Part shown: positions 9,901 through 36,150 of the stretch, piece after piece | Numbering within the stretch: position 1 is the stretch's first letter | Layout: every line of letters begins with the position of its first letter | NCBI RefSeq assembly: GCF_000143415.4 | Contig: NW_003314262.1 | Coordinates: 2,400,998-2,464,997 of the forward strand | DNA: 64,000 nucleotides | Reading direction: 5' to 3' | From: Selaginella moellendorffii | Lineage: Eukaryota > Plantae > Lycopodiophyta | Position numbers and translations under genes: made by a program | Notes under the pieces: generated by a model | Database searches by the model: none | Told to the model about the DNA's origin: nothing | Seen by the model: only the letters and a program-made list of their open reading frames with translations

Positions 9901-12900
9901 GTTTTATTAATTCTTTCTTAATAAAAAGAATCTTAAGTTTAATTTGTAATAAATTTCTCTTGAAATTTTTTAAATAAAAAAGTAAAAATTACAATTTTAA
10001 AAGAAATAGACTACAAATTAAGTTAATATTATTTTGTGACTTTTCACATGAAAATATATCAATTGAAACACCATATCACATCCAATCAAATTGCCTGCTC
10101 AAGGGCAGGGTGAATCACTGCACTGTTCCACAGCTCATTCACTTCAATAGCTAGAAGGGTTCCAATTGTCAACTTCTCATATACATAGATGACTCTTAGA
10201 TGGGTATCCATAATGGAAACCATGAGTTAAGTTATATAATGTATGCATAGATGCCACATGTGTATGTGAGATGCTAGGTGAGGAGGTAAATAACATTTTG
10301 TCCTCTTTCAGTTTTGCTTCCAAAAGTTTCTAGTGTGGAAGAAGTGAAGACAATGTTACACCCATAAGAAAAAAATTTGAACATTCAAGACTTTTTGGTT
10401 TGCTTAAGCAAAATTTGTAGAGGTGGTAGTGGATATACCTAAGATACTTGGATATTCTAGGATATTCTACCATCTAACGATTGTTATTTATTTAGTATTC
10501 TTGTATTTATAATTTACAAACATGTTTATAATTTAAAAGCTTTCCACTTTCTAGTATATTCTTATTTATTCTAATGGTAGATATGCAATAATATTAATCT
10601 TGATTTATAAATTATAAACATATTTATAATTATCGATCAATTAAATTATGAATGACACTAAAACCAAGTGTTGCTACATGAAATGTGCAGCAAATTATTG
10701 TAAACAAGAGGATTTGCTAGTCTAGTCTCCACCTAATTACACCTCAAAATTCTTGAGATGAAAACTACAGGATATCTAACAATCTACCTCCAAATTATAA
10801 AGCAAACATTATTATTCAATGTGGTGGGGTGTATACAGAAAAGTACCAACAAAAGAGGTATTGAGTTAGGTTTGGAATAATGTAGTTATGAATTGTGTTA
10901 GCACAAACTAGAGTACCATTAACTCATGCTTCAATAGGATAAAAATTCTGTTGATAGGAAGTTTGTGAAGCATTGGCAATGCATGATCTCACAAGGCTAT
11001 AGTAGAAGCATATGCTTATAATTCAAAGATGGATTTACACTAATGTAGAGCCTTACATACTATGCCATATGAACTATGAGTAAATTTTGTTGTAATTATC
11101 CAAGACTTAAACATTCCCTATGGTAGCATACTGCAACTTATATCATATGAATTTTACGTTCATGCTTTGATATATGGGGCAACTCATTATATAGTCATTT
11201 GTGAGTTGTCAACCACCAAACAAACACATGCAATTTTCAACATATACATGTGGGCTGTACATAAATTTGGTCAGCCTAGACACATTAGAAGTGACAATGC
11301 TCCTAAACATAATGTAATAGAGAATGCTATAGTATCTTGTTAGGGTCCTTAAGGTAGGAACTTTATTCATGGGATGTCGACAAGAAGCCAATTTTGCCCC
11401 TAATATTTTATTATGCATATTCATCACCACCAACCTCCCTATTTCCTAGCACATTGAGCACTTTTGGCATAAATTCTATAAGTGTGTGGTGTGATTCTAT
11501 AATATTCAAATGTATGGAGGATATTGGAATATTAAATATTTCTAACACGTGGCACAAGCAAAGTCTACAATGTGTTTTTGCACCATCTCTTACGAAAGAC
11601 ATATCTTGCTGGGTTGCCATGTGGAATTTACATGAGGTGCATCCATATCATTGAGTTCTTCAAGTTGTCTGATGATCTATTAAACTTGTTCAAGCCATGA
11701 TATGCATAAACATTATATAATCATTCTTTAAGATTTATAAATGTTGAAGGTATGACTCTTTTGGTCTATATTGACACTGCTCTTCCTTCTACAACATCAA
11801 TCAAGAGGCAAGCACTTTAGAAAGTGCAAGTAACATTGTTTCAAACAAACTAACAACTAAGCCTTTTTATTAATTAAGATTCTTTTTTTTTAGTTTCCAC
11901 ATGTTTGCTTGGCTGAAACACATGTCCAAATTGTACCCAACCAGGCCTTAATATTGATTCTCTTGGTTTTGAATTATAGGGATTGCAATTGCATGAGCTT
12001 GATGGATATCCCACCTGTGTGGATCATTGTATTGAAACTTTATTATGATTTTGAAAGAAACCTAGCATGGCCATTATTCTAGAGTTTACCAATCAAATCA
12101 ATTTTTCTCTAGTAGTGATTTAATGCATCTTGGAATTTGTGATCAATTGCAAAAATTATTAGGAAATAATTCCCTCCTGCCTCAACCAAAAATATTTCAG
12201 CTTTCTCTAGTGTTTGAATTATCATATATTTATTTTTATAAAGAAAGTGGAGCTTCAATCTTGCATTTCAATCACAACACTACATGATAAACTTTTTGCA
12301 CTTCCTCTCCTCTCCATAACAAGCCTACATAAATAAAGACCTAATGAGAATAAATGGAGGTAGAGGTAATTTGACTCTAAACAATGCCAAGAACAATATT
12401 TTAGATGATTCTAGCAATCCTCTCAATCTTCCCTCCATCTCCAATTTACAAATTACACATGCAGGCTTGGTTCTAATGGTCTTGTTTATATATGAGCATA
12501 TAGAGTGTAGTTTGCTGATGCATCAACTTAAACAGGTAATAACCTTCCACCAAGTCTCTCTTTCAATCAAATCATAAGTCGCTCTCCACAGGATCTGGAT
12601 GTAAGTTCCAAGGATTGAGCACTCTACTAACCCAATGAACTCAATAATTTTTTAGTGGCACTTGTAGCACCCCAACACAATTGCTAGATATGCAATAAAT
12701 GCCACCACTGGCAAGTATAGATAACCCCAACATGACTGTTACAAATGCAATGAATACCACCACTAGGTTAACAAGGCCATATTGCACTAGGTAGTAGCAA
12801 TTCCTTTGTAGTCTGGATGACTCAATCTGTGTTGGTAGGAGCTTGGAATTACCATGCCATCCTCTTGGTATTCCAGATGCCTGATTTTATTTGCTCCCAA

Positions 12901-15785
12901 TCTGGCTTAAGTGGAGAACCAACTTTATGGTGTCTCAAAGAGGATTCAAACTATATTCTTCCTTAAAGAGAGTTGCTAATGTAAATGTTTTCCAATTTTT
13001 TTGGATTTTTAATTCTTAATTGCATCTTGGTTTGCAAGAACCTTTGGCCATCCCACCCCAACTATTAGTACAAAAAGATATTGTTTGCTCAATACATATA
13101 ATTATTTTTTTTATATTTATTAAGTGTTATCTTCTTTAGTTCTTGCCATGTAGACATATGCATGGGAGGTCTAAATACCTATCCAAGTTCTTGGGAGTTT
13201 ATAATGGTGTCAAGTGCACTAATTTCTCGTCCTGTGAAAATGAATCTTATAGAGGAAAATGTTGTTATTTCTACGGCCTAGACTTTGCAACTCTATGGGA
13301 AACAAAGGTAGCCAATAAAGAAAATTTTGAAACTCAAATATTAAAGCATTTGTCTAGCAATTAAAAAAATTTAGTAGGCCATTTAGATGCAATAAAATAT
13401 GGGTTTACCTCATACAAGCTATGATATTTGTCTCCATTTGCAACTTGATCATTGATTTGCAACAAGTCAAGCCACCACAAATCCACTAATAACATTAGAT
13501 TGCTTACTAAAAGTAAACACGTTCTCTAATGAAGAAGGAAAAACAACTAAAAGATAAGAATCAAAATCAAAATTATTTATATTATTTATCACCCATTGCA
13601 ATGCATGTTTTTTTAGGGGTTAAGAGCCCATGATAAATATTAAGCCCCCACCACTAACTCCTAAAGAGCAATTACCACTAATGGACATAATCAAAGCACT
13701 AGTAGTGGAGAGGCTCAAGTTTATTGTTGCCAATGATAAAGATAATGAGCAAAAGGAAAAAAAAATAGATTATATAAAACATAAATACACAAAGAGCATG
13801 ATGAAACAAAATTTTCCTATCTCAAACATTCCCACCTTCAGAAGCTAATATCAGTAAGTTTTTCTTTCCTTCCTCACCCAAGTCCTCACTAAAAGCATTT
13901 TTTACTCTTGTGGTGGTCTTGAATAGTGATGACTATTTTGTATTAGAAAATCTTACACCACCTTTTGGCAATGAAAACCACTAAACATCATTCCCACTAC
14001 CAAAAATGTTTCACTCAATAACAACTTAAGTATAAGTAGTTTAGTTATGGAGCACTTAATATGTAATGTTGTTAATTCATGTAGTTTTGAGTCGATAAAC
14101 ACTACCATGGGTTGCAACAACACATTAGAGCTTGCCATACAACCTGAGGCTATTGACAACATGGGTAATTTCCAAGAAACGTGAGTTATAGATTATGCAC
14201 TGTCAATTTGGAGCTTGTAGTAGTGAATGATTTTGACTTCATGGCACGTATATGTTAGCTGAAGCACAATGTGCTTGAAACATATTGCATGTCAACACAA
14301 GAAAGCGAAGATCAGTTGGAAATACTAAGAGACCATAAAGAGTTCAAGTGGCTTGGTGGGGGAATAATTCCTCTAATGTATTGTTAATACCAATTCTATG
14401 CTATATTAGCAAGAATGGAAATTGGTTCTCAATTGGCTTAGAGTGGATGAGGGTAAGTTTGAAGACTTGTTTTACTCATGAGTTATAAAGCTACTTTTAC
14501 CTCAAACTAGACACAATATTATGACTTCAATATTGGAGATGAGTGCTATATAATTCTATGAGTGAAGGTAAACCATTACTTTTTTGCCTTATTATGATAG
14601 TTAGTTTATATATTTATAGGCTCCACCATTGCAATAAGGACAAGGTTGATAAGTTTTGAGAACTATATAAAAATACTGACACTCTATACTACTAATTCTC
14701 AAGGTTTTTAATGCAAAACGTGATGAGCATAGACCATATAAAAGAGCATAGGGAAAATTAAAATCTACAGATCTATTGATGAGATTTACAAATAAAAAAT
14801 GGAAACTAGCCTCATACAATTCAAATTTGTAGATAGCTCCCTAGAATGAGTTTAAATATTTCCAATTTGCCTTTAAGTCAAAATTGCAAAGTCTCAACTC
14901 AAAGGTGGTATATGCTTATAAACTTTATGGAGCCTTGGTTTGGGAAATGATAACTATCAAAGCAAGGGGGCCATAAAAGAATGTTGTTTGTGAAGTAATG
15001 CTATAAAAATGAAAATGCATTGCTCATGGCTTTGCTGCCACCCTCTTCCCACAAGTTGGTTACCTACTTAAAATGAAGTCATAATTTGGGACATTTGAAG
15101 CTATAAGTAGTCTAACCATAAAATTTAGGCATAACTAAAGTTATAGCATCAATAATCACAATCAATCTTTACAATTAAACCGAGATATAAAGGTTTAAAA
15201 GATATATTCTATTTAAAGTATCTTTAAATAAATATATGGGAGAAAAACATTATTAGTAAATTAAATTTTTCTCTTTTTAAGTTATAATAGTTTAATTTAA
15301 AGGAAGAGTTTCCCACAAAAAACTAAGACTATGAAAATGAATTAAACTAATAAAAATTACTTCACAATGTTGTGCTGGTGCCAAAGTTTCTCTGCTTGAC
15401 ATTGTTATAACATGATTGAGTGGTGAGAGTCACTACTTATTAAAGGCACTAAATATAATAAATTCATACATTTAGCTAATAATATAGAAACTGAATTTTT
15501 TTAAATGATCCATTTAGCACTAATTTAAAAGACTCTTGCATTAACTAAAGCCATTAATTAGCTGTGAAGTGTAATTTATCTGTGTGAAGTGCCCAATATT
15601 GTATATTATAAATGTCCAAATTAGGCTTCTTTAATTCTGGTCAAAGTCAATAGTCATATCTAAAAGGTATTCAAACATGGAAGCTAATGCAGAATTTGGC
15701 ATGATTGCAAATATAAAATAAATTAACTCTATATAAAAGGCTATGTATGAGGGCTCTAAACAAGTCTTCAAACATAACATTTGCA

Positions 15786-16316
15786 ATGAGATATACAATC
15801 TTGGTTGCATCTTTTCTTCTCACCTGTCTCTACACTGTTGTGGATGCTAAAAAATGTGGAGCTTCATGTAACAAAGATGATGATTGCGATGGTAAGATTG
15901 CATGCATGGATAATGTTTGTGCAGATGACCCAAATATGAACACTCACATATGTGGTGGTAGTCGCAAAGAAGGGCCAGCAAAAAGTGGTAGTGGTGGCAA
16001 TGGTGCTAGCCTTGGCAAATGTGGCACATCATGTTCCAGTAACGACGAATGTTCTGGAAAACTAGCATGCATGAGCAGCTTTTGTGGGGATGATCCTGAT
16101 GTGGGAACTTCCATCTGTGGCAGCAATGGCAATGATAATAGTGGCAGTAACACTGGCAATAAGAACCCAACTCCTCCAGACACTCCATTCCCTAATATTC
16201 CTGATCCAGATATGCCACTCCCCAGTTCTCCCAATGAAGGTCCATCTACTAGTGACTCTCCATCTCTTCCAAAGAAACCCCCTCCAGGGAAACCCAAGTA
16301 TCCAGTGCCATATTAG
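15786..16316 (+). CDS. Secreted protein with two tandem kissper-like domains and a Pro-rich tail (copy 3)
   Basis: TATA at about 15730, signal peptide, units ending CADDPNMNTHIC and CGDDPDVGTSIC. It is a clear paralogue of 9373-9900. Confidence 0.85.
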   Translation: MRYTILVASFLLTCLYTVVDAKKCGASCNKDDDCDGKIACMDNVCADDPNMNTHICGGSRKEGPAKSGSGGNGASLGKCGTSCSSNDECSGKLACMSSFCGDDPDVGTSICGSNGNDNSGSNTGNKNPTPPDTPFPNIPDPDMPLPSSPNEGPSTSDSPSLPKKPPPGKPKYPVPY

Positions 16317-18667: not shown

Positions 18668-19989
18668 TTAGTATTCTTCCAGATCGTCATCCTCGAAAAC
18701 CGGCCTTCCCCACACGATTAATTCCGGGCGAAGGCGGCGAAAGAACTCCTCGTCTTCTTCGTCGCGAAAGAATTCCTCGACCTCCTCCTCTTCTTTCTCT
18801 TCTTCTATCGGTTTCGAGAGGCTCTTGAGCACGAAGCTTTTGGGATCTTTGATCTCGAAGTCGTACCGCTGGAGCGATCTGCCTTGCGCCGATACGTGAC
18901 AGATGCTGCCACGAAGAGGAGAAGATCAGATCATCAGCGTGACACGAAACGAGAAACGGAGAAAGGACGAGAAAAAAGAAATGCTAGAGCTTACCAGATG
19001 TAATAGAGCTGATCCGTGGATTGTTTTTGGACACGCCCGATGAGCTCCACCTGGAAGATTCCACCGATGCACACGACCGGCCTTGGAAGACGAAATGTCT
19101 GCAGTGAATCAGCCTGTTCACGCAAAAACAAGAGAGAAGCTTAAAACCTTCTATATATCACAACACTAGTCCATACCTGTTCCACGGGATACATCGGCGA
19201 AACATACTTCCAAACGTAGTTCCCATCGGGGTGAGGATTGCTCCAAGAGTGTCCACCAGGAGCACGGCAAGCCTGGTATCCAAAGTAGAATCGAACGAAT
19301 TTCGGCGAGTAGATTGGGCTGCCGTATTGAAAGAAAGCTGCAGCGCATATTGCAAAGTTAGAACTTTGAAAAGAGAAAGAAAGGAAGTACAAGCACACCT
19401 TCAAAAGGTCTCAACTTTATCTCCTCCACGACACACAGAGGTGTGACCATCCGGTAAGTCAAGAACTCTGGAACAGTTTCCAATTTCTGGCCTGTGCTAG
19501 ACCAGTACGACGGCGAGCCTGACGAGAGCCGCTTCGGGTGTGGATAGAGCGTCTGAATTACCTCCTCATTGGGATTGTCGGTGCTCGAAGCATGCAGTGC
19601 ATTCCAGATGTAGCTGCTCCTCGTCGACGATGTCCTCATCAGGGAGTAGTAGAAGTCACAGAACACCTTGTGCTCGCGTCTCAGAATGTCCTCCTCAGAC
19701 CGCGATTTAGAAAGCTCTACAGTAGTACAGTCGACACCGCTGGATTGCTCAGCCACCTCCCGAAACACTTCCAGCTCTGGAAATCGGATCATGCACAGCC
19801 GCCTCCAAAGTCGGCCATCAACAACTGCGGCACGACAATTAGCCAAAACTCGAGCGCCTCAAGGGACAAGATCCTACCGAGTCTGTGCCACGAGCGGCAC
19901 ACTGCACCGGCACGGGCGACATCCTCGTCGGTATCCAAGCACCCAAGAATCTGTAACATCGTGTCGTCATCCAGCCGCTTCACATCCAT
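18668..19989 (-). CDS. F-box protein (At4g00755-like type), multi-exon
   Basis: N-terminal F-box (LDDDTMLQILGCL..VARAGAVCRSW), conserved ASSTDN, SYWSSTG, FFQYGSPIYS and GRVQKQ motifs, and an acidic tail. TAA at 18668-18670. Confidence 0.88.
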
Positions 19990-20095: not shown

Positions 20096-21340
20096 CTACG
20101 TACGGATCTCCTTCTTTGGGTTCCTCAGTGCTGCGAGCATGTACAAAGCACCCGCGAGATTCACAACTCCAACCTAAAGACGAAAGAAAAATAAAAAACC
20201 CTTTTGTGATTGTACGTAATGGTAAAAGACTTACAATGAGAAGAGGCGGTGGACAGGCACCGCGGCTGACAAGCCACGAAAAGCTGAGGAAGAGGAACTG
20301 CGAGAGGCATACCAAGTTGGTTAGTCAGTTACTTTGAGAATAACTTCCTTTTCATCTTTCGAGGTCGAGAAAAACTCACGATGCGTCCGGCGACAGTGGA
20401 AGCATAAAAGGCCGAGGATCCATGGAAGCCAAGGCTGTCACCAAGCGAAGTTCCCAAGTAATAGATACCAAAAACCTTGAAAGTCACAAATTGTAAGCGG
20501 CACATACCATTCCTTGTTTGCTTACCACTGCCAGAATTCCTGTTGCTTGAATCCATCCCCGTGCTACAGGTTCCAGCCTGAAAAGAAGACCTGCATGTAG
20601 CATGATCAAAATCACGACACGAGATTGATATACTTGTCTCACCAAAGAGCGTCTCTGGGAAAACGAAGAAACAAATCCCAGCTATGGAGATGTAGATCCC
20701 GGTGAAAAAAGCAGCTCGGGCAGGCCTCGACAAGCGAGCAAAGATACTTTTAACGTGATCCCGTTCTACGCTGCACAGGCACAAGGTTTTCTCAAAAGCA
20801 AAAAATCTGCACAAACTTTGAGACCTTGTCGAAGCCATCGCTATGAATGCCTCTCCACCGCCGGGCTTACGCACACAAACGTCTGGATTGTTGGCGATCT
20901 CGATCGCAGAAGAAAATCCCCGGCCAAGAGAGAAAACAATCGACTCCTTGCCATTTCGTCCAGCTTGGCAAATCCCTTCCAAGCTTCCCAGAACGATCAC
21001 ATCCCCGTCCGCACGAACAGCGCCTCCTCTTTCGATGTTTCCAAACACCTGAAGTCCAGCCAAGAACAAGAAGAGAAAATTCCAACTTAGCCAAGAACAA
21101 GAAGAGAAAGAAAATCCATACCACCACACCACCCGAATGCTCGACGATCTCGCCGCGATTCACCGATCTCCTGACGAACAGGCAATGCTCCAGCGAAGAA
21201 TCGAGCAAGGAGCTGCCGCCGGCAGCCGCAGCACAAGAAATCCGCGAAAAATCTCGAGAATTCGTCCCCTTATGCGATAATCCATGCCAGAAGCTCGATC
21301 GCGGCGGAGCGCAGCACGGCCGCCCCAAGAGAAGCGCCAT
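20096..21340 (-). CDS. Putative plastid protein: MinC C-terminal-like beta-helix fused to a multi-pass membrane domain (7 exons, about 290 aa)
   Basis: Transit-peptide-like start. RRSVNRGEIVEHSGGVVVFGNIERGGAVRADGDVIVLGSLEGICQAGRNG matches the MinC_C pattern. Later exons encode about 4 hydrophobic helices. All GT-AG junctions keep frame to TAG at 20096-20098. Confidence 0.75.
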
Positions 21341-21609
21341 AGCCCTAGATTCAAAAACATGGTTCATGGATCGATCATACGAGTCTAGACGCATCCAGGC
21401 CGTCCGTTGGGCCTTAGGGTAGAGAGGGCTGTTTCGTCGCCGCGAGGGTTTTGGCGAGGGTTTTCAAGGCGCCTCCGCGCGGATCGCTCGATCACGGCAC
21501 TGCTGAGGTGAGTAGAATCGACAGCGCAATGTGTGGATGATCGCAAATTTTGGCTGCTTTTCTCCACGGCTTTCTCAGATCTGGCGGTTTTCTTGATTCT
21601 AGGGGTGAA

Positions 21610-23381
21610 ATGGCGACAGCGAATGCTACTCCAGCGTCTGCTAATCTGGTAAGCACCATAGCTTCTCGAAACTTGGAAGATACTGATTTTTCTTTTTTCT
21701 TTCCCTCTTTGTGCCAAGGTCGGGAATGCATTCATCAATCAGTACTACAACGTCCTACATCAATCTCCAGCGGTGGTTCATCGCTTCTACACCGATCAAA
21801 GCCAGCTTACGCGAGACTCTGGTGGCGCAGATGGTCCTGTGGAGACGGTCTCCACTCAACAGGTAAATTCTCGTGTTTTTTCTTTTTCTTGTGTGCTACT
21901 TGTTGATCTACTCTGCTCCAGGATATCCACGCGAAGATCATGTCGATGGATCTCACCGACTTTAAGGCCGAAATTAAGTCTGTGGTCTCTCAGAACTCTC
22001 TCGGAGGTGGAGTTCTTGTCATGGTGACTGGCTCCCTCTCGTGTAAGTCGACCGGGAAACGCAACTTTGTGCAGACGTTCTTCCTCGCTCCACAAGAGAA
22101 GGGATACTTTGTCCTGAACGACGTGCTGCGCTACGTTGACGAAGCACCAGCGGCGAAGACACTGCCATACAGCATGGCCAATGGGGTCGCCGAGTCCACA
22201 GTCTCCTCGATCCCAGAGCCAGGTCAGTGTCATTACGCTTTGAGATCAGTGACTGACTCGCGTGTCTCTCTCTGAATCAGACGAGCAGCTGGAAGGCGAA
22301 GGACTCGTGCCAGAGGAAACTTTCCAATCCGAAGAGTATGTGGTGCTGGAGAAGCCCGAGGACAAGGCACCCGATGAGCCTGAAGTAGAGGCTGTGGAGG
22401 AGCCCGCGGTGGTGGAGGTGGAGACGATCACCCAAGAGACAACTGTGACTCAAACTCAACCTGAGGAGTTTCAAGAGCAGGTGAAGACGACTACGGTGAA
22501 GATGTCGTATGCTTCCATTCTCGCTCAGAGTAGGGCCGCTCAACCAAGGCCTGTGGCTCCGAGACCAGCGCCAGTGAGCGCCCCTCCGCAGCCTGCCACT
22601 GTGGTTCCTCCTCCGGCTGCCAGCACAGTAGAAGAGCCTCCCAGCGACAAGGACAAGGAGGGTATGTTCTTCGTTTTTCTCTCTACTGTGTAATAACCAT
22701 TGTTTGTCTCAGGTGTCTACATTTCCAACTTGCCTTTGAACGCTACCGAGCAAGAGATTGAATCCAAGTTTGAGAAGTTTGGACCAGTCAAGCCTGGCTC
22801 CGTTCAGGTCCGGTCTATGAAGGTAAACGTTCCTTTTCTTCGATCCAGCTCGCAGCGATGGTGACCATCTCTCTGCAGGCACAAGGATATTGCTTCGCTT
22901 TCCTGGATTTCGAAGACCAACTGTCCGCGTCCAGCGCTGTGGAGGTAAAGAAACGTTTAGAATTATGCTTTGCATCTTCTGATCCTTATCCCTTGCTTTT
23001 CGAAGGCATCCAATAGCATTGAGATTGGTGGCCGGTTTGTAAAGGTGGAGTACAAGAGGGCCCATGGTACGTCCTTAATGAGCATTTCTTCTGTCACTTC
23101 CTAACAAGCATTTCGTTTCTTTGCCAAAAGGCTCTGGTCGAGGACGTGGACGGGACTTCCGCGGTGAAGGACGAGGCTATGGTGATCGAGAGGGTGGAGC
23201 AAGGGGAGGCTACGGCGACCGTGAAAGAGGCGGCGGCTATGGCGATCGCGATGGTGGTGGTCGAGGATACAACCGACGAGTGGAGAGCACTGACGAGGCA
23301 GGCTTTCGCCGCTACGACTCTCAAAGATCAAACAGGCGTGGTGGTGGCAACAGAGGTGGTCGTAGCAACGCCGCGGAATAG
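21610..23381 (+). CDS. NTF2 domain + RRM + RGG protein (G3BP-like), multi-exon
   Basis: VGNAFINQYYNVLHQSP..VHRFY and FVQTFFLAPQEKGYFVLND (NTF2), an acidic/Pro linker with SYASIL, an RRM (VYISNLP, GYCFAFLDF) and an RGG tail. Confidence 0.93.
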
Positions 23382-23610: not shown

Positions 23611-25122
23611 CTACGAAGGCTCGGGAGCTTCCGCTTTCGTGCTTTGTCGAACAGTAGCAAGCTGAGATCTCACAAACTTGCCGTAGGCTTGGAGAGCTTC
23701 GTCCCCGCCGAGAAATCTCCTCGTGAACCTTTCCGACGAGAGCATGATCATGTAAGGCTGCGAGAACTCCTTCCTGGCCAGGCCGCTCATGTAGAGCCAG
23801 TGCTGGAACGTCGTCCGCGGCACCACCTTTGCCTCCATGCTGAACGTGAGATACGACGAGAAGTGGCAAAGGCTGCTGAGCGGCTGCTTCATCACCCGGG
23901 TGTAGTACGCCAGCTTCTTGCTCAGGAGCTCGTCCCCGAGGTTGAAGATGCTGGGCTTCTTGCGCAGCAGCAGCGAGCACTCGTCGCGCGACAATCCATG
24001 GCGGAGGAGGAGATTGAGCCGGCCTTCCATCGCCTGGCTGTTTCTCGTCAACACTCCCGAGTGCGCGGACAGGAGGTAGTCGAGATCGTCGCCTTTGAAG
24101 TCGAGGCTGGCCAGGAACTCGAGCTTCGGTTTCACTCCTCGCTCGATGTTGAGCCCGACCATGGATGGATTCTTCCGCAGCATCAGCCGGACCTTGCTCC
24201 TTTGCATGCCCAAGCTCACGAAGTAGTCCACTTTCCCGGAGATCACCTTGAGCTTGCTGGTGGAGAAGCGAGGGAAGATGGTGATCACCCGGCACGCCTG
24301 ATCGCTGGAGAAGCCCAGCTCCTCGGTGAGATAGCCCACCACTGCGGTGAGACGCTCCGGGGTGACGGTGAGGATCTTTGGGAACTGGTAGATGATCTTG
24401 GTGATTTGCTCGCGGGAGAATCCCAAGCTCTCCATCGTCGTGATCCGGGGCTGGAGGTGTTTCTCCACGTCGTACTGGAGCACCATGGGAACGCACTGGA
24501 CGACCTTGCAGAAGGCCTTCTCGCTGCCGGCCTGCTCGAGCAAGAAGTTCGTCGTCTCCTCGAGAGTTTCCTTGTCGCTGGGACGCATCTGGACGATCCA
24601 CTTGCTGAGATCCACCTTGAATCGCTGGAAGGATAGCACCAGCGAGCAGAGGTTGGCGAGATTCTGCTGGAACTCGCTGGCATCCACTGCGAAGATCCAG
24701 CGCTTGTGCTGGCTCACAATCGTCGCCCAGATCTCCCTGTCCACGCGCAGCGCTGCCAGCGCCGCCGTGAGCTCCTGGAGGCGCTGCTCCACGTCCACGG
24801 CACTGCCGGCATTCGCGATTGGGCCCCAGAAGAGCATGCCCTTGAGATCATCGCCCTGGTAGCCGATTCTTTCCAGCGCGTCCAATCGCCGTGCGGCCTG
24901 CTCGCCGCTAAGCGCTGAGAGCTTGCCCGCGGTTGCGATGGGGATTCCCCGCGCTTGCAAGGCTCTGCAAAGCTCTGGATCTGGCGCCGGCGATGGCGCT
25001 GCTGCTGCTGTTGCAGCTCCCAGTGACGATGATTTTTCCGCGCATTTCGCGAGCTGGCCTACCGTCGACGAGGATCGCTTCTTCGTTCTGGCCACGGACA
25101 AGACGATCCGGCGGATCACCAT
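23611..25122 (-). CDS. mTERF family protein (organelle-targeted)
   Basis: Intronless ORF of about 500 aa with repeated mTERF units (LQYDVEKHLQPRI, LNIERGVKPKLEFL, LTFSMEAKVVPR). Confidence 0.9.
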   Translation of the reverse strand: MVIRRIVLSVARTKKRSSSTVGQLAKCAEKSSSLGAATAAAAPSPAPDPELCRALQARGIPIATAGKLSALSGEQAARRLDALERIGYQGDDLKGMLFWGPIANAGSAVDVEQRLQELTAALAALRVDREIWATIVSQHKRWIFAVDASEFQQNLANLCSLVLSFQRFKVDLSKWIVQMRPSDKETLEETTNFLLEQAGSEKAFCKVVQCVPMVLQYDVEKHLQPRITTMESLGFSREQITKIIYQFPKILTVTPERLTAVVGYLTEELGFSSDQACRVITIFPRFSTSKLKVISGKVDYFVSLGMQRSKVRLMLRKNPSMVGLNIERGVKPKLEFLASLDFKGDDLDYLLSAHSGVLTRNSQAMEGRLNLLLRHGLSRDECSLLLRKKPSIFNLGDELLSKKLAYYTRVMKQPLSSLCHFSSYLTFSMEAKVVPRTTFQHWLYMSGLARKEFSQPYMIMLSSERFTRRFLGGDEALQAYGKFVRSQLATVRQSTKAEAPEPS

Positions 25123-28077
25123 TCCATTCTTCACAAACCCTAAATGTGAATTTAGGGTTTCGACTCCGCATGCATTTCATGGCAATTTTGATTAATTTTT
25201 CAGATTCCAAGGAAATCAATATACCAATTATACTCTCTACGTGATTGCACAAAAAAATCTCTTGATGTAGCCAAGCACTAGAAGCTACAGGTTTATCATT
25301 CACTTGTTTGCATCCCTCCATTCACTAGGCATGATTGATCTTGTGGACAGTCGATATATGAACTAAATGTCTTAGTAGACATTATCCATTACATGGGCAT
25401 ATTTTTTTTCCTGTTATATAAATAATAAAAAAAATTGTTAAAAATACACTTGAGAGTATTTTTTTGCAATATTAACCATAATATTTGTGTGTTTTCATTT
25501 TTATCTTTACCATCTTGAAAAGTACTTGATGTTGCACTGTTGTATAAAAGTATATATCATTATACTGATTATTGCCCTTATTTCAGCCAAAAAACAAATA
25601 TAAGGTAATTCACAGTCTAAAAACTTTCAATATGAAAAAAACTTTTATGAAAGTTCATAATATTAAAATTTTCTAAGACAAACAAAAGGGCATTTTCTCC
25701 ATTATATTTTTCTCTACCATTAAGTTAACTGTATTACTTGTGTGGTGTATCAAATTAGTTCTAACATTTGAATCTTGACATATATGTAATAAATGTTTTC
25801 TTAATTATTAACTTGATCAACTAGTTTATATGCTTAGAGTGGGGGGACTTGAGAAAATTCCCAAGTTCTCTTATGTTGTATATATGTAGTTGAGGCTTAG
25901 AATTCATGTGGGTTGACCAAGGAGCACCTTGGGCACCAATTTTAAGCCTGGAATCCTTCAAGACGAGCCTTGGCCATACATGTAGCAACCTAAAATAATT
26001 TTTTTAGGTTTGGCAGGAAATGAAGCAATAATACAATTAGCGTGCCTAATAAAATTTAGAGGATATGGATTCACTACATTAACCTTTAAAGGGACAATCA
26101 AGTAGATCAAAAGTACTTACAGTAACATTAAAGGTGTAACCACAAGCTACAAATCAAGTAAAAGTTTGAAAATTTTGCATTTATATTTATAGTGGATTTC
26201 TAGGAAAATTTGACATTTTTAGCATCATTTTCCACTTTAAATTCTCATTTATTTGCAAAATAGAGTCTTGGGGATACTATGGTGAGCTAAAATCTTCATT
26301 TCATTCAAGCTAAAAAAAATATTTTTAGGAAATTTAAATGGATTTAGAACTTATGAAAACTCTAGAGGTAAGTGTTTGAAGTGTAATTTATGCAATATTT
26401 ATTTGCTCAATAAAGTGTTTTCACCACCAGGACTTCTCTAAGTCCACAAGATTTATTAAATGTGAGTTTTTCAAATTTAAACTTTTAGTTGTTTAAAGTT
26501 TATTTTCCTTTTACATTCCAGTTGACTTTGGTTCTTTCTTCATCCATAACTCTATTTCAATAGTAAAGAATACATTTATAAATAGTTTTGATACTTTAAC
26601 TGTCAAACTTTTAAATCCAAAATAGTGGAAGTGATTCAAATGATTTCAAACGAAAGATTAAAGCTAAAAAATGAAAGACATGGACATTAAAGGAGATAAC
26701 TAATTACACTAAGTGTTTAAATAATGCAAAGTATAGAAATAGGTTTATAGACATATCTAAAAGGAAAGATAATAGGTGAAAGTGGATTCAATAGTATTGT
26801 TGTGAGAATAAATATTGTTATAACTATTTTTAATGCAAGAAAAAATATGAGGACATAAAGAATGTTTACTTCAACATTCAGAAATGAGATCTTGATATTT
26901 CAAATAAGAAATCAAGCTATTGAAATATATCAAGTGACTAACGCATTGCTCAGAAATTACATCTTGATTTTCCAAAAAAGCTCTACAATGAAATGGATTA
27001 ACATGTTTTAGAAAGTGGTATTACACATTTATGTGGCCTTGTTTCTAACATATCAAGACAAAGAATTGTTGCTTCCAATAAGCATAATACACTATAGACT
27101 CAATTGTTGTAATCAAGTGAACCCTTATAATCAGTTATACTATATAGTTTACAAGCTTAAATCTAAGTCAAGAGCTAAGATTAGCTTTGAAGAGAGTAAG
27201 GGACAACACTCTAGAAATTGATTTGAAGAGACAGAGGGTGCCGAAAGGTGGTGAAGGGATGGTAAAGATGATGGAAAAAAGTCAAGAAGCACAAATAAAG
27301 CTTGTATAGAATCTTCACAAGCAAGCTATAATAAAGCAGCAAACAATGATTAACACTTTGACTTTGGAATCATAGCAAACACAAGAATGTTCAATCTACA
27401 AGATATGAAGGAGTAATTTACTTATCAAAGTGACTTATTTAAGATGTGGATTAGGAAGAGAATATAGCTTTTTCATTGGTGCAAACTCAATACATAATCC
27501 ATTACAATCGTTCTAAATCTAAATCCAAAAGTACTTCCAGCAACATTATTTTCTTTAGTATTATAATCTGGATTATAACTAAATTATATATACTAATGAT
27601 GGGCATAGCAATAGTTATAGGCCACTAATGCCTTAATACAACTTTTTATGTCAAGTTAACTTTACACTACTGATTTGGGCAAGGAACAACACAAACTTCT
27701 AAATTTCTCAATAGCAACTTAGCAAGATGACAGCTTAATGCTAATTGTTAATTCTCCCTTCTCCTTAATTCAATCTAGTGTTTAAGTTTAAATATAATTT
27801 AGAGAAAAATAATGATTAAGAAGAGGGAGAGGAAAATAGATCATGCTCAAGCTAAGGAAGATCTTGTCTTCCACACTCAAAGCACCTGAATCACAAGAAA
27901 ATAATGAGAATCCAAAATCCAAAACATCAAAATTCACTTTGCTCCATTTTATTTCAAAACCTAAAACTTTAACTTTTTGGGGAAAGTTTTAAATGAAGGA
28001 GGCATGGTTACAAGGAGAAAAGGTAAATGTGTATCAAAGAGGAAAGGTACAACTTTATTAACATCTCCACCACAACN

Positions 28078-31000: not shown

Positions 31001-34000
31001 CCCATTGTCTTGGGCACTCTGCCATGTCCCACAAAAAGTCTGTCATGATACTCTTCTAAGGCTACCTTCCTTAGTACCCCTTCTAGAACATACACCCTCG
31101 TTTGCTTGTAATAGATGAATCTATTGTGTTCTGCATAGCCCATTTTCTCTTCCGTTGGCAACTCACTTCTCTGGTGAGCTTTCTATTTTGCTCTCTTTAG
31201 CATACAGCTAGTGTTCTCTTAGTTTCTCAAACACCTTCGTCAAATGTTCGGCATGCTCCTCTAGCGATTCGCTATAGATCAGGATGTCATCAACATAAAC
31301 GACCATAAAGTGATCTAGATAGAGTACAAAGATGTGGTTCATCAATGCCGAAAACATTGCCAGTGCATTGCATAGCCCGAAGGGCATCACCAGAAACTCA
31401 AAGCTCCCATACCTTGTTTGACAGATTGTCTTCTTGACATCTTCCTCTGCTACCTTGATCTGGTAATATCTTGACTTTAAGTCAATCCTCGAGAAGTAAT
31501 TTGCCTATCCCAACCTATCAAACAAGTCCTCAATCCTTGGCAAAGGGTATTTGTTCTTCTTTGTATATTTGTTGAGTAACCAGTAGTCTATACACATGCG
31601 CATAGATCCATCTTTCTTTTTCACAAATAACACCGACACCCCATATGGCAACTTGCTCAACCTAACATACCCTTTGTCCACCAACTCCTCTAGTTGGTGC
31701 TTGAGCTCCTCGAGTTCTGTTTCGTTCAAAAGATAGGGGGGATAAACCACTGCCTCAACACCCTCAACTAGCTCAATCTTATATTCTATCAGTTGTGCAG
31801 GGGGCAACCTCGGCGGTAGCCCCTCAAGCATGGTATCCTGGAATTGGTCCAACACCCACTGGATCATTAAAGGTATTTCTTCTGTTCCTGTCTTTTTGTC
31901 ACTCTTCACCGAGAGTAAACACAAAAATGCTACCTCAGTTCCTTTAGTGAGTTATCCTCTCGTGGACACCAAGTTTAGGCAAGAATCTTTGGCCTTGCAT
32001 TGCCCTACCTTTAGATCCTGGGCCTCCACCCTGGATCTTCTTCCTTGGGCATTCGCTAGTACCACAAGGTTCCTACCTTGCCCATACAGGGTTATCACGA
32101 ACTGATTGAATCAATCCATCCCGAAGATCACATCAAATCCTGCTATGTCCAACACGGTGAAATCCATGTCTACTTTCCATGTCCCTACTTCGACTCTCAC
32201 TTGTCGAAATACCTCATCGGTGCTTTGGCTACTTTGAACAAACTCTATAGTCCTTGGTTCACCCAGCCGTTGCACTATTAATGCAGCTTGCCAGACTATG
32301 TCTGCGGCCACAAAATTATCTAAAGCACCCGTGTCAATAGGGATCTTAACAAAGCTACCTCCGAGCTTCCCTCGAAGGGTTAGTAGATGTCACAAATGAC
32401 TCTTTACCAAAGTTGCTCATGTAATGAGTAACTTTGAGCTAGGGACTAGATCATATACCTCAATTTGGATTTCACTCGACTTAATGGCCATATTGGCTCT
32501 GGCTTTCTTCGGGTAGGGACATTCCCTCGAAAAGTGTCCCGCTTTACTACAGTTGTAGCATACATTATTTCCCACGCCACTAACTAACTTGACCTTCTTA
32601 TCTGTGGGTTTGTCTCTTTTTGCTTGACTCCCCCACGTACTTGTTCGCTGGCCACCAGATTTGCCTTTTCGGAACCCTGAGGATTCATTCTTAGAGAAAC
32701 TCTTCTTGAATTTCCTTTTGCAATACATTCCCCTTGGTTTGGCCCCTTTGCTAAATATGGACCCTGACCCCATCGTGTTCCCCTTTCGCAGGTTATTGTT
32801 AAAATGCACCTTGATGGCCGCATCCAACACTTTTTTATAATTGGTCGGGTTCCAATACATCACCTCACAAAGAACTCAAGTTTGCAAGCCTAATATGAAG
32901 GCATGGAATACATCCATATCCCCCATGTCCGTGACCAATATCCTCTTTGCCATAAACCCATTCACATACTCCTGAATGGTTCTGGTCTGCTTCAGCGTAC
33001 TCAACTTGTCTCTTAGATGCAGAGTAACATTCGGAGGAATGTAAGTCATACGGATCCTTGCCTTCATCATTTCCCAAGTGGCCACCGGCATTGGCCTCTG
33101 TCGTTTTTCATCATTTCCCAAGTGGCCACCGGTCCTTCGTTGGCCTCTGTCATTTTCCACCAAGACTTGGCATTATCTGCCAAGTATGATTTTGCACATG
33201 AGACCTTCTCTGAGCTTGGTAACCGCAACGCTCAGAAGTAGTCCTCCATATCATAAAACTAATCCTCCACCACCTTATAATCATTCACTCCCATAAAGAC
33301 TGATGGGGGCTTTGGTTTGTACTTGGGAACTCCTTGAGGGACTGATTCCACTTCAGTCTGTTCGACCTTGTTTGGTTTTGCCTCAGTCCCTGCCGAAGGG
33401 TCCGCACCTTTTGTGCTGCCAGCATCTGCAGTCTTTTGCTTTTTCTTCCACTTCTCGTCACGCTTTAGCTTGTGTACAAGAGTCTCTAGCAAGGCATTGG
33501 TCTGTGCCAATTGTCCTTCTAAAATGTCCAATTGAGTATTGGACGACCGAACCTCGCCACCGGACTCCTGTTTGGAAGTTTCCTCACTGGAATCCTCCTC
33601 ATGCAAGGATTCCTCATCTATAGCCTCTTGTTCGACTGGAGGCTCCAGCTCTGGCAGAGGTTCTATCTCCACCTTGGTTCATATCTGCCCTGCCTTTGCC
33701 ATATCCCAGCAATCCACCTCTATCCTTCGCTAGAACTGAGGAAAAGGCTCCAATACCAAATTGTAAGCCACAAATTTTTCCTTTTCAATTTGCCAGCTTA
33801 CCTCATCTATCCGATCAACACTACTTTGGCTTTTGTTAAGTTCCCTCGCCAAGGTTCCTGCTTATTGTACCAGCTTCTACTTGGTCCTACTTGGTTTCAA
33901 CTACTCACTACACGAGCAACAAAGCGTTAGCCATCCATCCATGGATTCCCAAATCTCCCCCAATCCCCCTCTCTGGGTTAGACTGNNNNNNNNNNNNNNN

Positions 34001-35004
34001 NNNNNNNNNNNNNNNNNNNNNNNNNNNNNNNNNNNNNNNNNNNNNNNNNNNNNNNNNNNNNNNNNNNNNNNNNNNNNNNNNNNNNNNNNNNNNNNNNNNN
34101 NNNNNNNNNNNNNNNNNNNNNNNNNNNNNNNNNNNNNNNNNNNNNNNNNNNNNNNNNNNNNNNNNNNNNNNNNNNNNNNNNNNNNNNNNNNNNNNNNNNN
34201 NNNNNNNNNNNNNNNNNNNNNNNNNNNNNNNNNNNNNNNNNNNNNNNNNNNNNNNNNNNNNNNNNNNNNNNNNNNNNNNNNNNNNNNNNNNNNNNNNNNN
34301 NNNNNNNNNNNNNNNNNNNNNNNNNNNNNNNNNNNNNNNNNNNNNNNNNNNNNNNNNNNNNNNNNNNNNNNNNNNNNNNNNNNNNNNNNNNNNNNNNNNN
34401 NNNNNNNNNNNNNNNNNNNNNNNNNNNNNNNNNNNNNNNNNNNNNNNNNNNNNNNNNNNNNNNNNNNNNNNNNNNNNNNNNNGTTGATCCGGAATTGGGT
34501 TGGGAAACCCCACGGGAGAGTTCCCTTAAGTTATGTTTCTGGCCCGCCGACACCTTGGAAATACTTTGGGAACCCCCTGCAGCCCCCCCCCCCCCCCCCC
34601 TTCTGGGAGATGCATGTTTTGGGCTTTCACCCCTTGACCTATATTGGGATTCGGACTTGGTCTTGGACTTGATCTTGGACTTGATCTCGGACCCGATCTC
34701 GAACTCAATCTCGAACGCGATCTCGGACTCGATCTCAAACCCAATCTCGAACTCAACTTCGGACTCGACCTCGGACTCGGTCTCGGACCCGATCTCGGAT
34801 CTCAGACTCTGTCTCAAACTCGGTCTCCGAGTCGGCCTCGGACTCAATCCCAGACTCAATCCCAGACTCTATCTCGAACTCAGTCTCAGAGTCGGTTTTG
34901 AACTCGATCTCAGACTCAGTCCTATCCAATGAACACTTTTTTCATTTCGGTCATGCTTTCGGGGATCCTTTAGCCTATGACCCTTGGGGAGTTGGTTCCT
35001 TACA
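28078..35004 (-). mobile_element. Chromoviral Ty3/gypsy LTR retrotransposon, copy A (decayed, RNase H deleted)
   Basis: 5' LTR 33762-35004 (TG...CA), tRNA-iMet PBS about 33747-33758, gag with CCHC knuckle, protease, RT (YVDD), integrase and chromodomain remnants, PPT about 29255-29265, and a 3' LTR from 29253 into the gap. The right flank CAACA and left flank CAAC(N) fit a 5-bp TSD. Confidence 0.92.
28900..29170. repeat. Degenerate CpG-rich 6/12-bp tandem array inside the LTR (also at about 34640-34920, 57005-57290 and 63605-63890)
   Basis: Reiterated CTCGGA/CTCGAT/CTCGAA units at the same position in all four LTRs. Confidence 0.9.
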
Positions 35005-35229
35005 CAACACTTCCAGGTTTTTATAAGTAAATACTTATTAAGAGAGGAAACACTATAGAACTTACTATGCTTTTATAGTTTACTTTATAAGAAAACAGTA
35101 ATAAAGTGTATAGACAAACTAAGATCTTGAAAGGACATTGAAGAATTTGAACAGGATGGGCTAAGTGAGAGGGTTGCATCCAAAAAGTATAACATTTTGA
35201 GGTTGTTGTTATCAATCTGGAGAAATGGA

Positions 35230-36150
35230 GTTTAAATAAAAAAAACCAAAGGACCTAAAATTGTGCTTACACTTGAGGAAGAGGAGATCCTTAAGAAATT
35301 CCTCATAACTCATCAAGAATCAAACATTTAATGTAGAAAGTCGATGTTATAGAATTAATAACTTTCTTTACCTTTTGCAAAGAAACAAACCTATTCTCTT
35401 ATATAACTCTTGGATAATCCTAGTGGAATGAATTTTTGAAATGCCACCCAAAGATCATATATAGAACTAGAAAACCATTAAAAGTTAACTACACAAACTT
35501 CATGAGTAAACCTATTATAAATGCATTTTACCAAAACTTGAGGATACACACTAAAGTAAATATGAAACTATAATGAAGTTGAAATATTTACTAGTCAAAC
35601 TCAAGGTGTAAAGGTGTTAGCTCTACAAGGTTCAAAATCAGTCTATATAATCATTCCAAACAACACTGAACATCTCACTGTGTTGACATATTGCAATGCA
35701 GCTGGACAAATGATTCTAAATATGTATATTTTCCAATCAAAAAAAAGAATGTCTAACTGGACAACATGTTGCAAGTCAAGATATGCATTAGCAATCAGTA
35801 AAAACACATGAATCAACAGTGTTTTATATCTTGGCTAGCTTCTTTGCAAGATCTACAGACCATACATCTAAACACCATCACCTTCTTATAACAAATGGTC
35901 ACAAGAGCCATTGCAACTTCGTAGCTTTGGTGAAAGCAATGTCCTTAAGCATCGACATAACACTAATCCCACCTTATAGATCACATAAATTACAACCACT
36001 TAACCTTAATCTCTTTAGGCTATTCAAAACTAACTTTAAGAAGCTTGTTAACTGAATGGCAAGAATAACAACCACAAAGGATATTGTTTAGTTGGTTTCA
36101 AAAGTATCACTTCATGCATGCTCAAAGAGTAACATTAAAGTTGAATTCAA
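35230..36150 (+). mobile_element. Degenerate pogo/Fot1-like (DDE_1) DNA transposase remnant
   Basis: Broken frames with HLTVLTYCNAAGQMIL, LLITNGHKSH and LIPPYRSHKLQPLNLNLF, typical of pogo-type DDE_1 domains. Confidence 0.75.

Follow-up and report, generated by a model that had tools for sequence, protein, structure and literature searches.

Does a nuclear gene of the lycophyte Selaginella moellendorffii that joins a MinC-like domain to a predicted membrane domain encode a surviving part of the plastid Min system and, if so, what could it do there? According to plastid-division reviews, bacterial MinC gets to the membrane through MinD while plants use ARC3; the reviews up to 2026 state that MinC was lost in plants and that ARC3 assumed its role, and a moss MinC-like gene receives a passing mention in reviews as possibly compensating for a missing ARC3. 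The original prediction for this locus, whose background on MinC and ARC3 agrees with these reviews, had proposed an envelope-anchored relic or a repurposed part of the plastid Min division system. The gene is located on the minus strand of the window (the whole 64,000-nucleotide stretch of DNA that was analysed), at 20096-21394, and its seven exons encode a protein of 308 amino acids.

A MinC C-terminal domain joined to a membrane domain

The MinC_C domain spans residues 73-143 (20893..21178, minus strand, split by intron 1). Exon 1 (21122..21394, or from the ATG at 21340, with the donor GTATGG) runs through the N-terminal extension into the first turns of the beta-helix, and exon 2 (20825..21048) encodes the beta-helix core. 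The Pfam MinC_C model (PF03775, gathering threshold 33.2) matched the full protein with 49.7 bits (E 3.9e-13) and exon 2 by itself with 35.6 bits (E 9.6e-9), and NCBIfam MinC models matched exon 2 at E 2.5e-7. A phmmer search against the PDB retrieved the MinC proteins of T. maritima (E 7.8e-9) and Aquifex (E 6e-8), and Foldseek placed the AlphaFold beta-helix (pLDDT ~90) on four solved MinC C-domains (4v02, 5xdm, 1hf2 and 6riq) with an rmsd of 0.5-1.7 A and a probability of 1.00, the superposed domains being 23-38% identical over 50-65 residues. These results confirmed the MinC_C-like beta-helix of the original prediction, which had named the Pfam search as a check. No match to the MinC N-terminal domain (MinC_N, PF05209) was found in the Selaginella protein at E values up to 10, as had been anticipated, or in 19 family members at E values up to 0.01; bacterial matches such as P0018 carry this domain. 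A tree of 145 MinC_C domains, in which the bacterial entries are without names, was poorly resolved.

The membrane domain occupies residues 181-308 (20099..20727, minus strand, split by introns 3-6). Exon 3 (20643..20770), which is present in NCBI isoform X1, encodes the last part of the linker followed by an amphipathic helix and then membrane helix 1; exon 4 (20526..20590) encodes loop 1 and the beginning of membrane helix 2; exon 5 (20380..20475) membrane helix 2, loop 2 and the beginning of helix 3; exon 6 (20235..20297) membrane helix 3 and loop 3; and exon 7 (20096..20173) membrane helix 4 followed by a C-terminal tail of basic character, with the TAG stop at 20096-20098. Four hydrophobic segments and four long predicted helices (residues 181-211, 219-244, 249-273 and 280-300, all with pLDDT >95) bear out the approximately four transmembrane helices read earlier from the letters. 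The N-flank has a charge of +1.6, loop 1 of -0.6 and the C-tail of +1.0, which fits a topology in which the two termini share the 'inside' (stromal) face.

Compared with bacterial MinC (1HF2, 4V02, 5XDM, 6RIQ), the Selaginella protein shares the C-terminal right-handed beta-helix but not the N-terminal FtsZ-inhibitory domain, and whereas bacterial MinC is soluble and recruited by MinD, the Selaginella protein carries a covalent, predicted four-helix membrane domain. Its gene also differs in being nuclear, containing introns and encoding a putative presequence, and no minD or minE genes were found as its neighbours.

To place the protein in a family we relied on an exhaustive search of 1.84 billion proteins, in which both domains were present in 35 of the best 153 representatives. 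The fusion extends from prasinophytes to ferns, with holders among lycophytes, a fern, a moss, liverworts, Chara, Mesostigma and chlorophytes (named members: Diphasiastrum, Physcomitrium, Riccia, Calypogeia, Marchantia, Ceratopteris, Chara, Mesostigma, Cymbomonas, Myrmecia and Bryopsis), and has so far been seen only in Viridiplantae and alga-like metagenome contigs. A word-index search with the whole-family alignment returned mostly marine picoalgal metagenome proteins and zero additional named taxa. With the family HMMs, full-length P0003 scored 98 bits in the MinC_C model and 173 bits in that of the membrane domain, and MinC_C was recognisable in 19/19 members, with a best E of 1.3e-27; the beta-solenoid of FapA was rejected as an identity for the domain, given its E of 6.5e-6 vs that value and the structural matches to MinC. 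The members share an order of variable N-extension, MinC_C, short linker and four-helix domain, to which the Selaginella protein conforms. At 308 aa vs 334-411 aa in other land-plant members, it is shorter because its distal beta-helix and linker are reduced; the region concerned, residues 135-166, has low model confidence.

The moss protein XP_024395735.1 belongs to the same family, which places the Selaginella gene among the MinC-like genes of non-seed plants, as the original prediction had it. The two proteins align over their full mature length and share the embryophyte clade, and both genes have seven exons in the same layout. A Physcomitrium transcript contig (L092), 100% identical to its genomic locus over 7 aligned blocks, carries the complete fusion, with both halves on a single transcript; blocks 4-6 measure 68/97/66 nt, overlapping ends included, vs 65/96/63 nt for the Selaginella exons (~96 vs 96 nt in the case of exon 5). 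The family is unnamed, and UniProt uses the label 'MinC C-terminal domain-containing protein'. A Chlamydomonas MinC homologue is entered in PMC4641359, and the reviews and tables consulted give the moss and algal genes only as MinC homologues, with neither the membrane domain nor the absent N-domain noted. In the literature searched, the membrane domain of green MinC-like proteins is unmentioned, to which Yang 2008, Miyagishima 2011 and Osteryoung & Pyke 2014 may add, and we found no localisation, topology, interaction or mutant data for family members.

Taken together, we propose, with a probability of roughly one half, that the Selaginella gene is a member of a green-lineage family in which MinC_C is permanently anchored in a membrane, and that it encodes a candidate plastid protein contacting FtsZ or MinD1. 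The four helices would span the membrane of the inner envelope (or of the thylakoid), both ends facing the stroma, and this anchor would hold the beta-helix, probably a dimer like that of bacterial MinC, on the membrane surface, where it could touch FtsZ filaments and/or MinD1 and help to restrict or remodel Z-ring assembly. Without the N-domain, it could do no more than the bacterial C-domain, whose activity is weaker and directed at the FtsZ tail and filament bundling; full MinC depolymerisation would be beyond it. In this proposed niche, that of a stromal-side negative regulator of plastid FtsZ assembly, it would be joined by ARC3, the functional analogue of MinC in plants, which is unrelated in sequence and domains, being a stromal protein with an FtsZ-like domain and a phosphatidylinositol-4-phosphate 5-kinase-like region (MORN repeats); neither the FtsZ-like domain nor the MORN repeats gave a Pfam match in the Selaginella protein at E values up to 10.

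Bacterial relatives of the four-helix domain

The membrane domain is the better conserved part of the family, with a mean column identity of 55% vs 25% for the whole protein. That of Selaginella is 31-57% identical to those of other fusion family members and has all the family-invariant residues (T189, G190, Y192, G197, P204, Y236, F253, R261, N288, A292 and M295). No Pfam family matched it above threshold, DUF2065 (E 0.01-0.05) and SLC3A2_N being discarded as sub-threshold noise, and a PDB fold search with the whole model and with the membrane domain by itself left the four-helix domain unmatched (best E 1.7).

A profile search identified bacterial homologues (e.g. P0175, P0176, P0179 and P0180) with E values from 2e-13 to 7e-8. 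Residues 181-308 align end to end with these free-standing proteins of 121-127 aa, nine columns (G, Y, G, P, L, W, L, F and R) being invariant across green and bacterial sequences, and the same four-helix fold was predicted for a bacterial homologue with a pLDDT of 94. A genome scan queried with three bacterial sequences located 102 bacterial loci that encode such relatives, which stand alone and occur across many bacterial phyla. At the level of sequence comparison, these results showed that the plant four-helix domain descends from a free-standing bacterial membrane protein, and its homology to a widespread bacterial protein of ~120 aa appears to be a new point. As for the distribution of the two halves, which had been suggested as a check, the fusion belongs to the green lineage and the membrane domain is also found by itself in bacteria.

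In the membrane-domain tree the bacterial sequences were separate from the green ones, which formed one clade (SH-aLRT 99) with the embryophytes as a nested clade (95); this arrangement of the green sequences is what vertical inheritance of the fusion would produce. The sole 'cyanobacterial' copy, from Synechococcus sp. CS-1332, falls inside Burkholderiales and probably reflects either a contaminating contig or recent transfer; because of this position, the donor of the membrane domain cannot be named. We also inspected the neighbourhoods of 80 bacterial loci (L007-L086), in which no neighbour recurred in more than five loci, no MinC_C gene lay within 4 kb and no min genes were nearby, so that gene context gives no functional hint.

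The higher conservation of the membrane domain and its independent life in many bacterial phyla, away from min genes, favour a different role, that of a plastid-membrane protein whose beta-helix was repurposed for dimerisation or docking of the four-helix domain and is unconnected with FtsZ or MinD. Such a protein might act in membrane biogenesis, in transport regulation or in some further role that came with the bacterial membrane protein, and the absence of the N-domain, together with the erosion in land plants of the motif described below, points the same way. However, MinC_C has stayed recognisable in every one of the 19 members, from prasinophytes to ferns, early-branching members still carry R-x-G-Q, and the bacterial homologue has no known function and thus offers nothing concrete to inherit. 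We consider this repurposing unlikely, although it is a serious contender.

The MinD-binding motif and the N-terminal extension

Whether an anchored MinC_C could still work with MinD depends in part on the RSGQ motif, which in bacterial MinC binds helix 7 of MinD (PMC6803595, PMC5548801). Its position in the Selaginella protein corresponds to N79-R80-G81-E82 (21149..21160, minus strand), where NRGE aligns with IRSGQ in the MinC of T. maritima and LRAGQ in that of Aquifex. In the family motif table, Mesostigma has RGGQ and Cymbomonas RAGQ, whereas the arginine is missing in 8/8 embryophyte sequences, Selaginella included. In these alignments, the motif is kept in early-branching algae and eroded in every land-plant member sampled, a pattern that also appears to be new, and its erosion makes a classical MinD-driven role doubtful in land plants.

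This pattern would be explained if the built-in anchor of the proposed membrane-held MinC_C protein had made recruitment by MinD no longer needed. On this basis we tentatively extend our proposal, at clearly less than even odds, to a history in which the common ancestor of green plants gave up soluble, MinD-driven MinC for an anchored MinC_C, made by joining the C-domain of MinC to a bacterial four-helix membrane protein unrelated to it. The outcome would have been a MinD-independent regulator of plastid FtsZ, at work together with ARC3 or earlier than it in algae, bryophytes, lycophytes and ferns, that disappeared in the line leading to seed plants. A role in division is nonetheless not guaranteed, since, with RSGQ eroded and the N-domain absent, the protein lacks the two parts of MinC whose functions are best understood.

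Retention of the fold and of most of the MinC_C sequence, along with R-x-G-Q in Mesostigma and Cymbomonas, would also be consistent with a classical MinC role, in which the protein inhibits FtsZ with MinD1 and MinE1, the anchor adds affinity and changes in MinD1 compensate for the altered motif; the suggestion in reviews that the moss gene might offset the missing ARC3 goes in the same direction. But in bacteria MinC has to bind to and leave the membrane in cycles together with MinD, as reviewed for the bacterial system, and a four-helix anchor forbids such cycling. The loss of the motif arginine from all embryophyte members and the lack of an N-domain add to this difficulty, and a classical role is in our judgement quite unlikely.

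The place where the protein acts would be set by the N-terminal extension (residues 1-70; 21185..21394, minus strand), which is presumed to be an organellar presequence. Residues 1-68 are predicted to be disordered (pLDDT <50 in the AlphaFold model), and the extension contains 20% Ser+Thr and is net basic, features in line with the transit-peptide-like N-terminus described in the original prediction. Its sequence varies across the green fusion family and holds 10/16 of the coding differences between the Selaginella haplotypes. We infer that it is a plastid transit peptide, but its composition is only generically organellar and would suit a mitochondrial presequence equally well. The extension could then direct the protein to mitochondria or other membranes, comparable to the MinC-/MinD-like proteins of some heterokonts, and mitochondrion-targeted MinC-like proteins have indeed been reported in Nannochloropsis. 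The Nannochloropsis paper itself, however, regards the green-lineage MinC-like proteins as presumably cyanobacterial and links them to plastid MinD. The confinement of the family, so far, to the green lineage and alga-like contigs likewise argues against a destination outside the plastid. Moreover, no mitochondrial FtsZ/Min system is known in green plants, and we hold a non-plastid location to be quite improbable.

Gene model, alleles and implications for the family

All exon junctions are GT..AG, the introns measure 50-82 nt and a single open frame continues to the TAG. The NCBI start at 21394 lies 54 nt upstream of a second in-frame ATG at 21340, the start taken in the original prediction, from which the coding span would match its 20096-21340 exactly and the product would have 290 aa; P0001 and P0003 both use the upstream ATG. 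The protein is collinear with XP_024531668.1, the 308 aa NCBI model on the other haplotype scaffold, with 299/308 residues identical, and the single spliced frame first reported for the locus is confirmed. The NCBI models at the window locus itself are shortened isoforms of 212 and 170 aa that use alternative acceptors: in exon 4, an AG located 10 nt downstream (start 20580) yields isoform X1, which has a premature stop. A word-index search with exon 2 matched only these two isoforms, and the full-length reference P0003 was obtained through a cluster look-up.

When the haplotypes were compared, 6/714 nt differed in the mature coding part, 8/372 nt in the introns and 10/210 nt in the presequence, with zero differences in exons 5-7 and an identical exon 4 acceptor region. 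The early ends of the NCBI models might suggest that separate genes or transcripts were joined by prediction, or that the allele yields only shortened products, but this is largely refuted and has a very small chance of being correct, as the seven exons all keep the reading frame and have canonical splice sites, NCBI gives the second haplotype at full length with the same disputed acceptor and no change in exons 5-7, the moss contig covers both halves and 35 representatives have the same architecture. The conservation of the fusion, together with a haplotype divergence far lower in the mature part than in the introns, suggests that the gene is maintained rather than decaying. The 'relic' of the original prediction is to be qualified accordingly.

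Moss and algal 'MinC-like' genes were already known from reviews, and the homology of the membrane domain and the pattern of motif erosion are what is added here. Judging from sequence, plants described as MinC-less keep a putative membrane-bound remnant of MinC, from green algae to ferns. The family is conserved and apparently selected, and it retains only the half of MinC that binds MinD and the FtsZ tail, tied covalently to the membrane, which raises the questions of whether a fixed MinC_C still regulates Z-rings, whether MinD1 is required and why seed plants apparently gave the protein up. An uncharacterised family of small membrane proteins, widespread in bacteria, gains with it a first eukaryotic context. 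If the reading as a MinD-independent regulator is true, the statement that plants lost MinC would hold only for seed plants, and the family would be an overlooked component of the plastid divisome, open to genetics through its orthologues in the transformable models Marchantia (AXG93_154s1830) and Physcomitrium (LOC112291939).

Domain architecture and green-lineage distribution

We examined the domain content of the predicted Selaginella moellendorffii protein by profile and structure comparison. Exon 2 alone matched Pfam MinC_C (35.6 bits against a threshold of 33.2) and seven NCBIfam MinC models, and the full-length protein covered positions 1-71 of the 102 in the Pfam profile with 49.7 bits (E 3.9e-13). 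Among PDB sequences, phmmer retrieved the MinC of T. maritima (E 7.8e-9) and that of Aquifex in the MinCD complex (E 6e-8). With the family alignment as input, AlphaFold2 predicted a disordered segment (residues 1-68), a beta-helix (70-132, pLDDT ~90), a low-confidence stretch (135-166), an amphipathic helix (167-178) and four long helices (181-211, 219-244, 249-273 and 280-300, pLDDT above 95). With Foldseek the beta-helix superposed on the MinC C-domains of Aquifex, E. coli, T. maritima and P. aeruginosa with an rmsd of 0.5-1.7 A and a probability of 1.00. The membrane domain matched no Pfam family and no solved structure, and no MinC_N domain was found in the Selaginella protein or in 19 relatives. 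The original prediction of a MinC_C-like beta-helix followed by about four transmembrane helices in one spliced frame, with no MinC N-terminal domain, was thus borne out in full, the helices at the level of a confident structural model. Compared with bacterial MinC, the Selaginella protein lacks three defining features, namely the N-domain, the RSGQ motif for MinD binding and, given its predicted membrane helices, solubility; it carries all the features examined of a green MinC_C-plus-membrane family.

To outline this family we searched 1.84 billion representative proteins exhaustively with HMMER, using as query P0001, a protein that starts at the upstream ATG. Of the 830 matches, the top-scoring ones measured 300-510 aa and aligned over the beta-helix as well as the first membrane helix. 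When each domain was given its own HMM, 35 of the top 153 representatives contained the two together; another 117 were MinC-only and mostly resemble ordinary bacterial MinC. Fusion members come from a lycophyte (Diphasiastrum complanatum), a fern (Ceratopteris richardii), a moss (Physcomitrium patens), liverworts (Marchantia, Riccia and Calypogeia), streptophyte algae (Chara braunii and Mesostigma viride) and chlorophytes (Cymbomonas, Myrmecia and Bryopsis), together with many marine metagenome proteins of picoalgal appearance. UniProt automatically names members "MinC C-terminal domain-containing protein". No seed plant appears among the retrieved names (15 of the 35 representatives carry none), in agreement with the literature. 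Mean column identity is 55% in the membrane half versus 25% in the whole protein, the membrane half being the better conserved. We also observed a GC-rich, alga-like protein of 264 aa (P0098) in which MinC_C precedes a linker rich in Ala and Gly and a hydrophobic tail that scores under the membrane-domain HMM threshold; it is a divergent relative and perhaps a family member in degenerate or truncated form.

Gene model, transcript and second copy

At 100% identity exon 2 matched two NCBI isoforms of LOC112348022, annotated as an "uncharacterized protein": X1 with 212 aa and X2 with 170 aa. We rebuilt the gene in this nuclear DNA manually from three-frame translation and splice signals, which gave seven exons on the minus strand (21394-21122, 21048-20825, 20770-20643, 20590-20526, 20475-20380, 20297-20235 and 20173-20096), separated by introns of 50-82 nt with GT..AG at every junction and read in an open frame to a TAG at 20096-20098. 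Translation starting at the 21394 ATG yields 308 aa, and starting at the 21340 ATG it yields 290 aa; because the latter ATG and the TAG bound it, the originally predicted span of 20096-21340 is the exact coding sequence from the second ATG.

A cluster look-up led to a second locus, LOC112346587, whose isoform X3 (XP_024531668.1) is a 308-aa NCBI model collinear with ours, 299 of its 308 residues being identical. This locus, on scaffold GL377581.1, has the gene order of the window (mTERF, NTF2+RRM, MinC-like gene, F-box-like) and 98.2% DNA identity across the MinC-like gene, so the two are assembly haplotypes or a very recent duplicate. Differences between them amount to 10 of 210 nt in the presequence, 8 of 372 nt and a single indel in the introns and 6 of 714 nt in the mature coding part, with none in exons 5-7, the pattern, in small counts, of a gene under constraint. 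Both truncated NCBI models of the window allele depend on acceptors that differ from ours. In X1 an acceptor AG 10 nt inside exon 4 (20580) brings a stop four codons later, leaving a truncated protein with only the first membrane helix. At the second haplotype, isoform X2 (P0004) retains the 54-nt in-frame intron 2 (20771-20824) and gains 18 residues. These models suggest alternative splicing. As the surroundings of the exon 4 acceptor are the same sequence in both copies, the isoform difference stems from modelling or alternative splicing and not from the DNA.

The two halves had also been open to the reading that they are separate transcripts. In moss this is refuted by a 1610-nt Physcomitrium contig from a public sequencing run, which spans both halves and encodes the whole 411-aa fusion as a single uninterrupted ORF; since it splits into seven blocks at 100% identity on the genomic locus, it is a spliced mRNA. 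In Selaginella itself the evidence against separate transcripts is the NCBI model of the second haplotype. Exon number is the same in both species, and moss blocks 4-6 measure 68, 97 and 66 nt, adjacent blocks overlapping by a few nt, where the Selaginella exons have 65, 96 and 63 nt, so the division of the membrane-domain region into exons and introns is ancient.

Several neighbouring features were recorded. An NTF2+RRM (G3BP-like) gene on the plus strand, with its ATG near 21612, stands head to head with the MinC-like gene across a gap of ~220 bp (21395-21611), an arrangement repeated at the second locus, and the two genes probably have a common bidirectional promoter. Directly downstream on the same strand as the MinC-like gene lies an F-box-like gene (~18900-19989, minus) whose first exon matches Pfam F-box-like at E 1.5e-7, and 23611-25134 (minus) holds an intronless 507-aa mTERF-family ORF (Pfam E 3e-39) whose product probably acts in organellar gene expression. 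At 15747-16316 (plus) an intronless ORF encodes a Cys-rich, secreted-looking protein of 189 aa with a Pro-rich tail and two copies of a CG-x-SC...C-x-GK-x-ACM...C-x-DDP...ICG module, its sole Pfam match being a weak EB-module (E 0.004). ARAGORN and Rfam agree on a nuclear tRNA-Pro (TGG) at 46921-46994 (plus). AT-rich blocks at ~10000-16000, 26000-28000 and 34000-36000 (GC 0.29-0.34 versus a background of ~0.45-0.55) may derive from transposons or be spacers with few genes.

Origin of the two halves

The membrane-domain profile found four proteins of 121-127 aa (P0175, P0176, P0179 and P0180; E 2e-13 to 7e-8) that align end to end with the plant domain and share nine invariant columns with it; the two that were looked up come from contigs that are gene-dense and of bacterial type. 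When one genome of every prokaryotic species was scanned, 102 loci were found to encode relatives, spread over Bacteroidota, Burkholderiales and other Pseudomonadota, Acidobacteriota, Gemmatimonadota, Chloroflexota and other phyla. This widespread four-helix family of ~120 aa was modelled at pLDDT 94, and we found for it no Pfam model, solved structure or conserved gene neighbourhood. In the membrane-domain tree the green domains are united in a single clade (SH-aLRT 99), within which the embryophytes are nested as a clade (SH-aLRT 95), and the bacterial proteins occupy the opposite side (SH-aLRT 99). The sole "cyanobacterial" copy (Synechococcus sp. CS-1332, NZ_JAHLYP010000052.1) groups with Roseateles and Burkholderiaceae, within the Burkholderiales, which suggests a contaminant contig or a recent transfer and makes the copy uninformative on a cyanobacterial source. 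Since no MinC_C gene lies within 4 kb of the bacterial four-helix genes, the fusion is, in the present sample, a green-lineage invention joining two unrelated bacterial modules. The fusion proteins also grouped on one side of a MinC_C tree, which at 107 columns had little resolution, and their MinC_C may have a single origin.

Erosion of the MinD motif and predicted membrane orientation

In bacteria, MinC is carried to the membrane by MinD and displaced by MinE; its C-domain dimerises, binds MinD via RSGQ and has its own FtsZ-inhibitory activity (PMC6803595, PMC5548801). At the RSGQ position the early-branching algae Mesostigma and Cymbomonas have RGGQ and RAGQ, and the motif is partly kept in Chara (ATGQ) and Myrmecia (RAGT). 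In all eight embryophyte sequences the Arg is lost and the Gln is replaced by Glu: NRGE in Selaginella, QSGE in Diphasiastrum, SSGE in Physcomitrium, GDAE in Riccia, HNGE in Calypogeia, and LPGE, LKGE and QRGE in Ceratopteris and two fern-like sequences. We infer that this erosion arose because a built-in membrane anchor would make recruitment by MinD unnecessary and so relax selection on the motif.

Net charge in 18 members was +1.6 in the flank before helix 1, -0.6 in loop 1 and +1.0 in the C-tail, which under the positive-inside rule predicts that both termini, and hence the beta-helix, face the side equivalent to the cytoplasm, here the stroma. Extensions at the N-terminus measure 39-229 aa, are unconserved, mostly contain 16-29% Ser+Thr and in every case have more basic than acidic residues; they are presequence-like, with a composition that fits plastid or mitochondrion alike.

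Recent reviews state that plants lost MinC and use ARC3; others propose that a moss MinC-like gene may compensate for the missing ARC3 of moss, and a Chlamydomonas MinC homologue is listed in a table (PMC4641359). In the literature on green MinC-like genes we found no mention that the proteins carry a membrane domain, that this domain has bacterial relatives, that the N-domain is missing or that the motif is eroded, an earlier description being possible. The originally proposed part in a plastid Min division system is a reasonable, partly supported interpretation: identity and fusion are solid, the plastid location and the role in division inferred. The Selaginella gene adds one member to its family, whose interest lies in the architecture and its evolutionary pattern, both open to direct tests in moss and liverwort.
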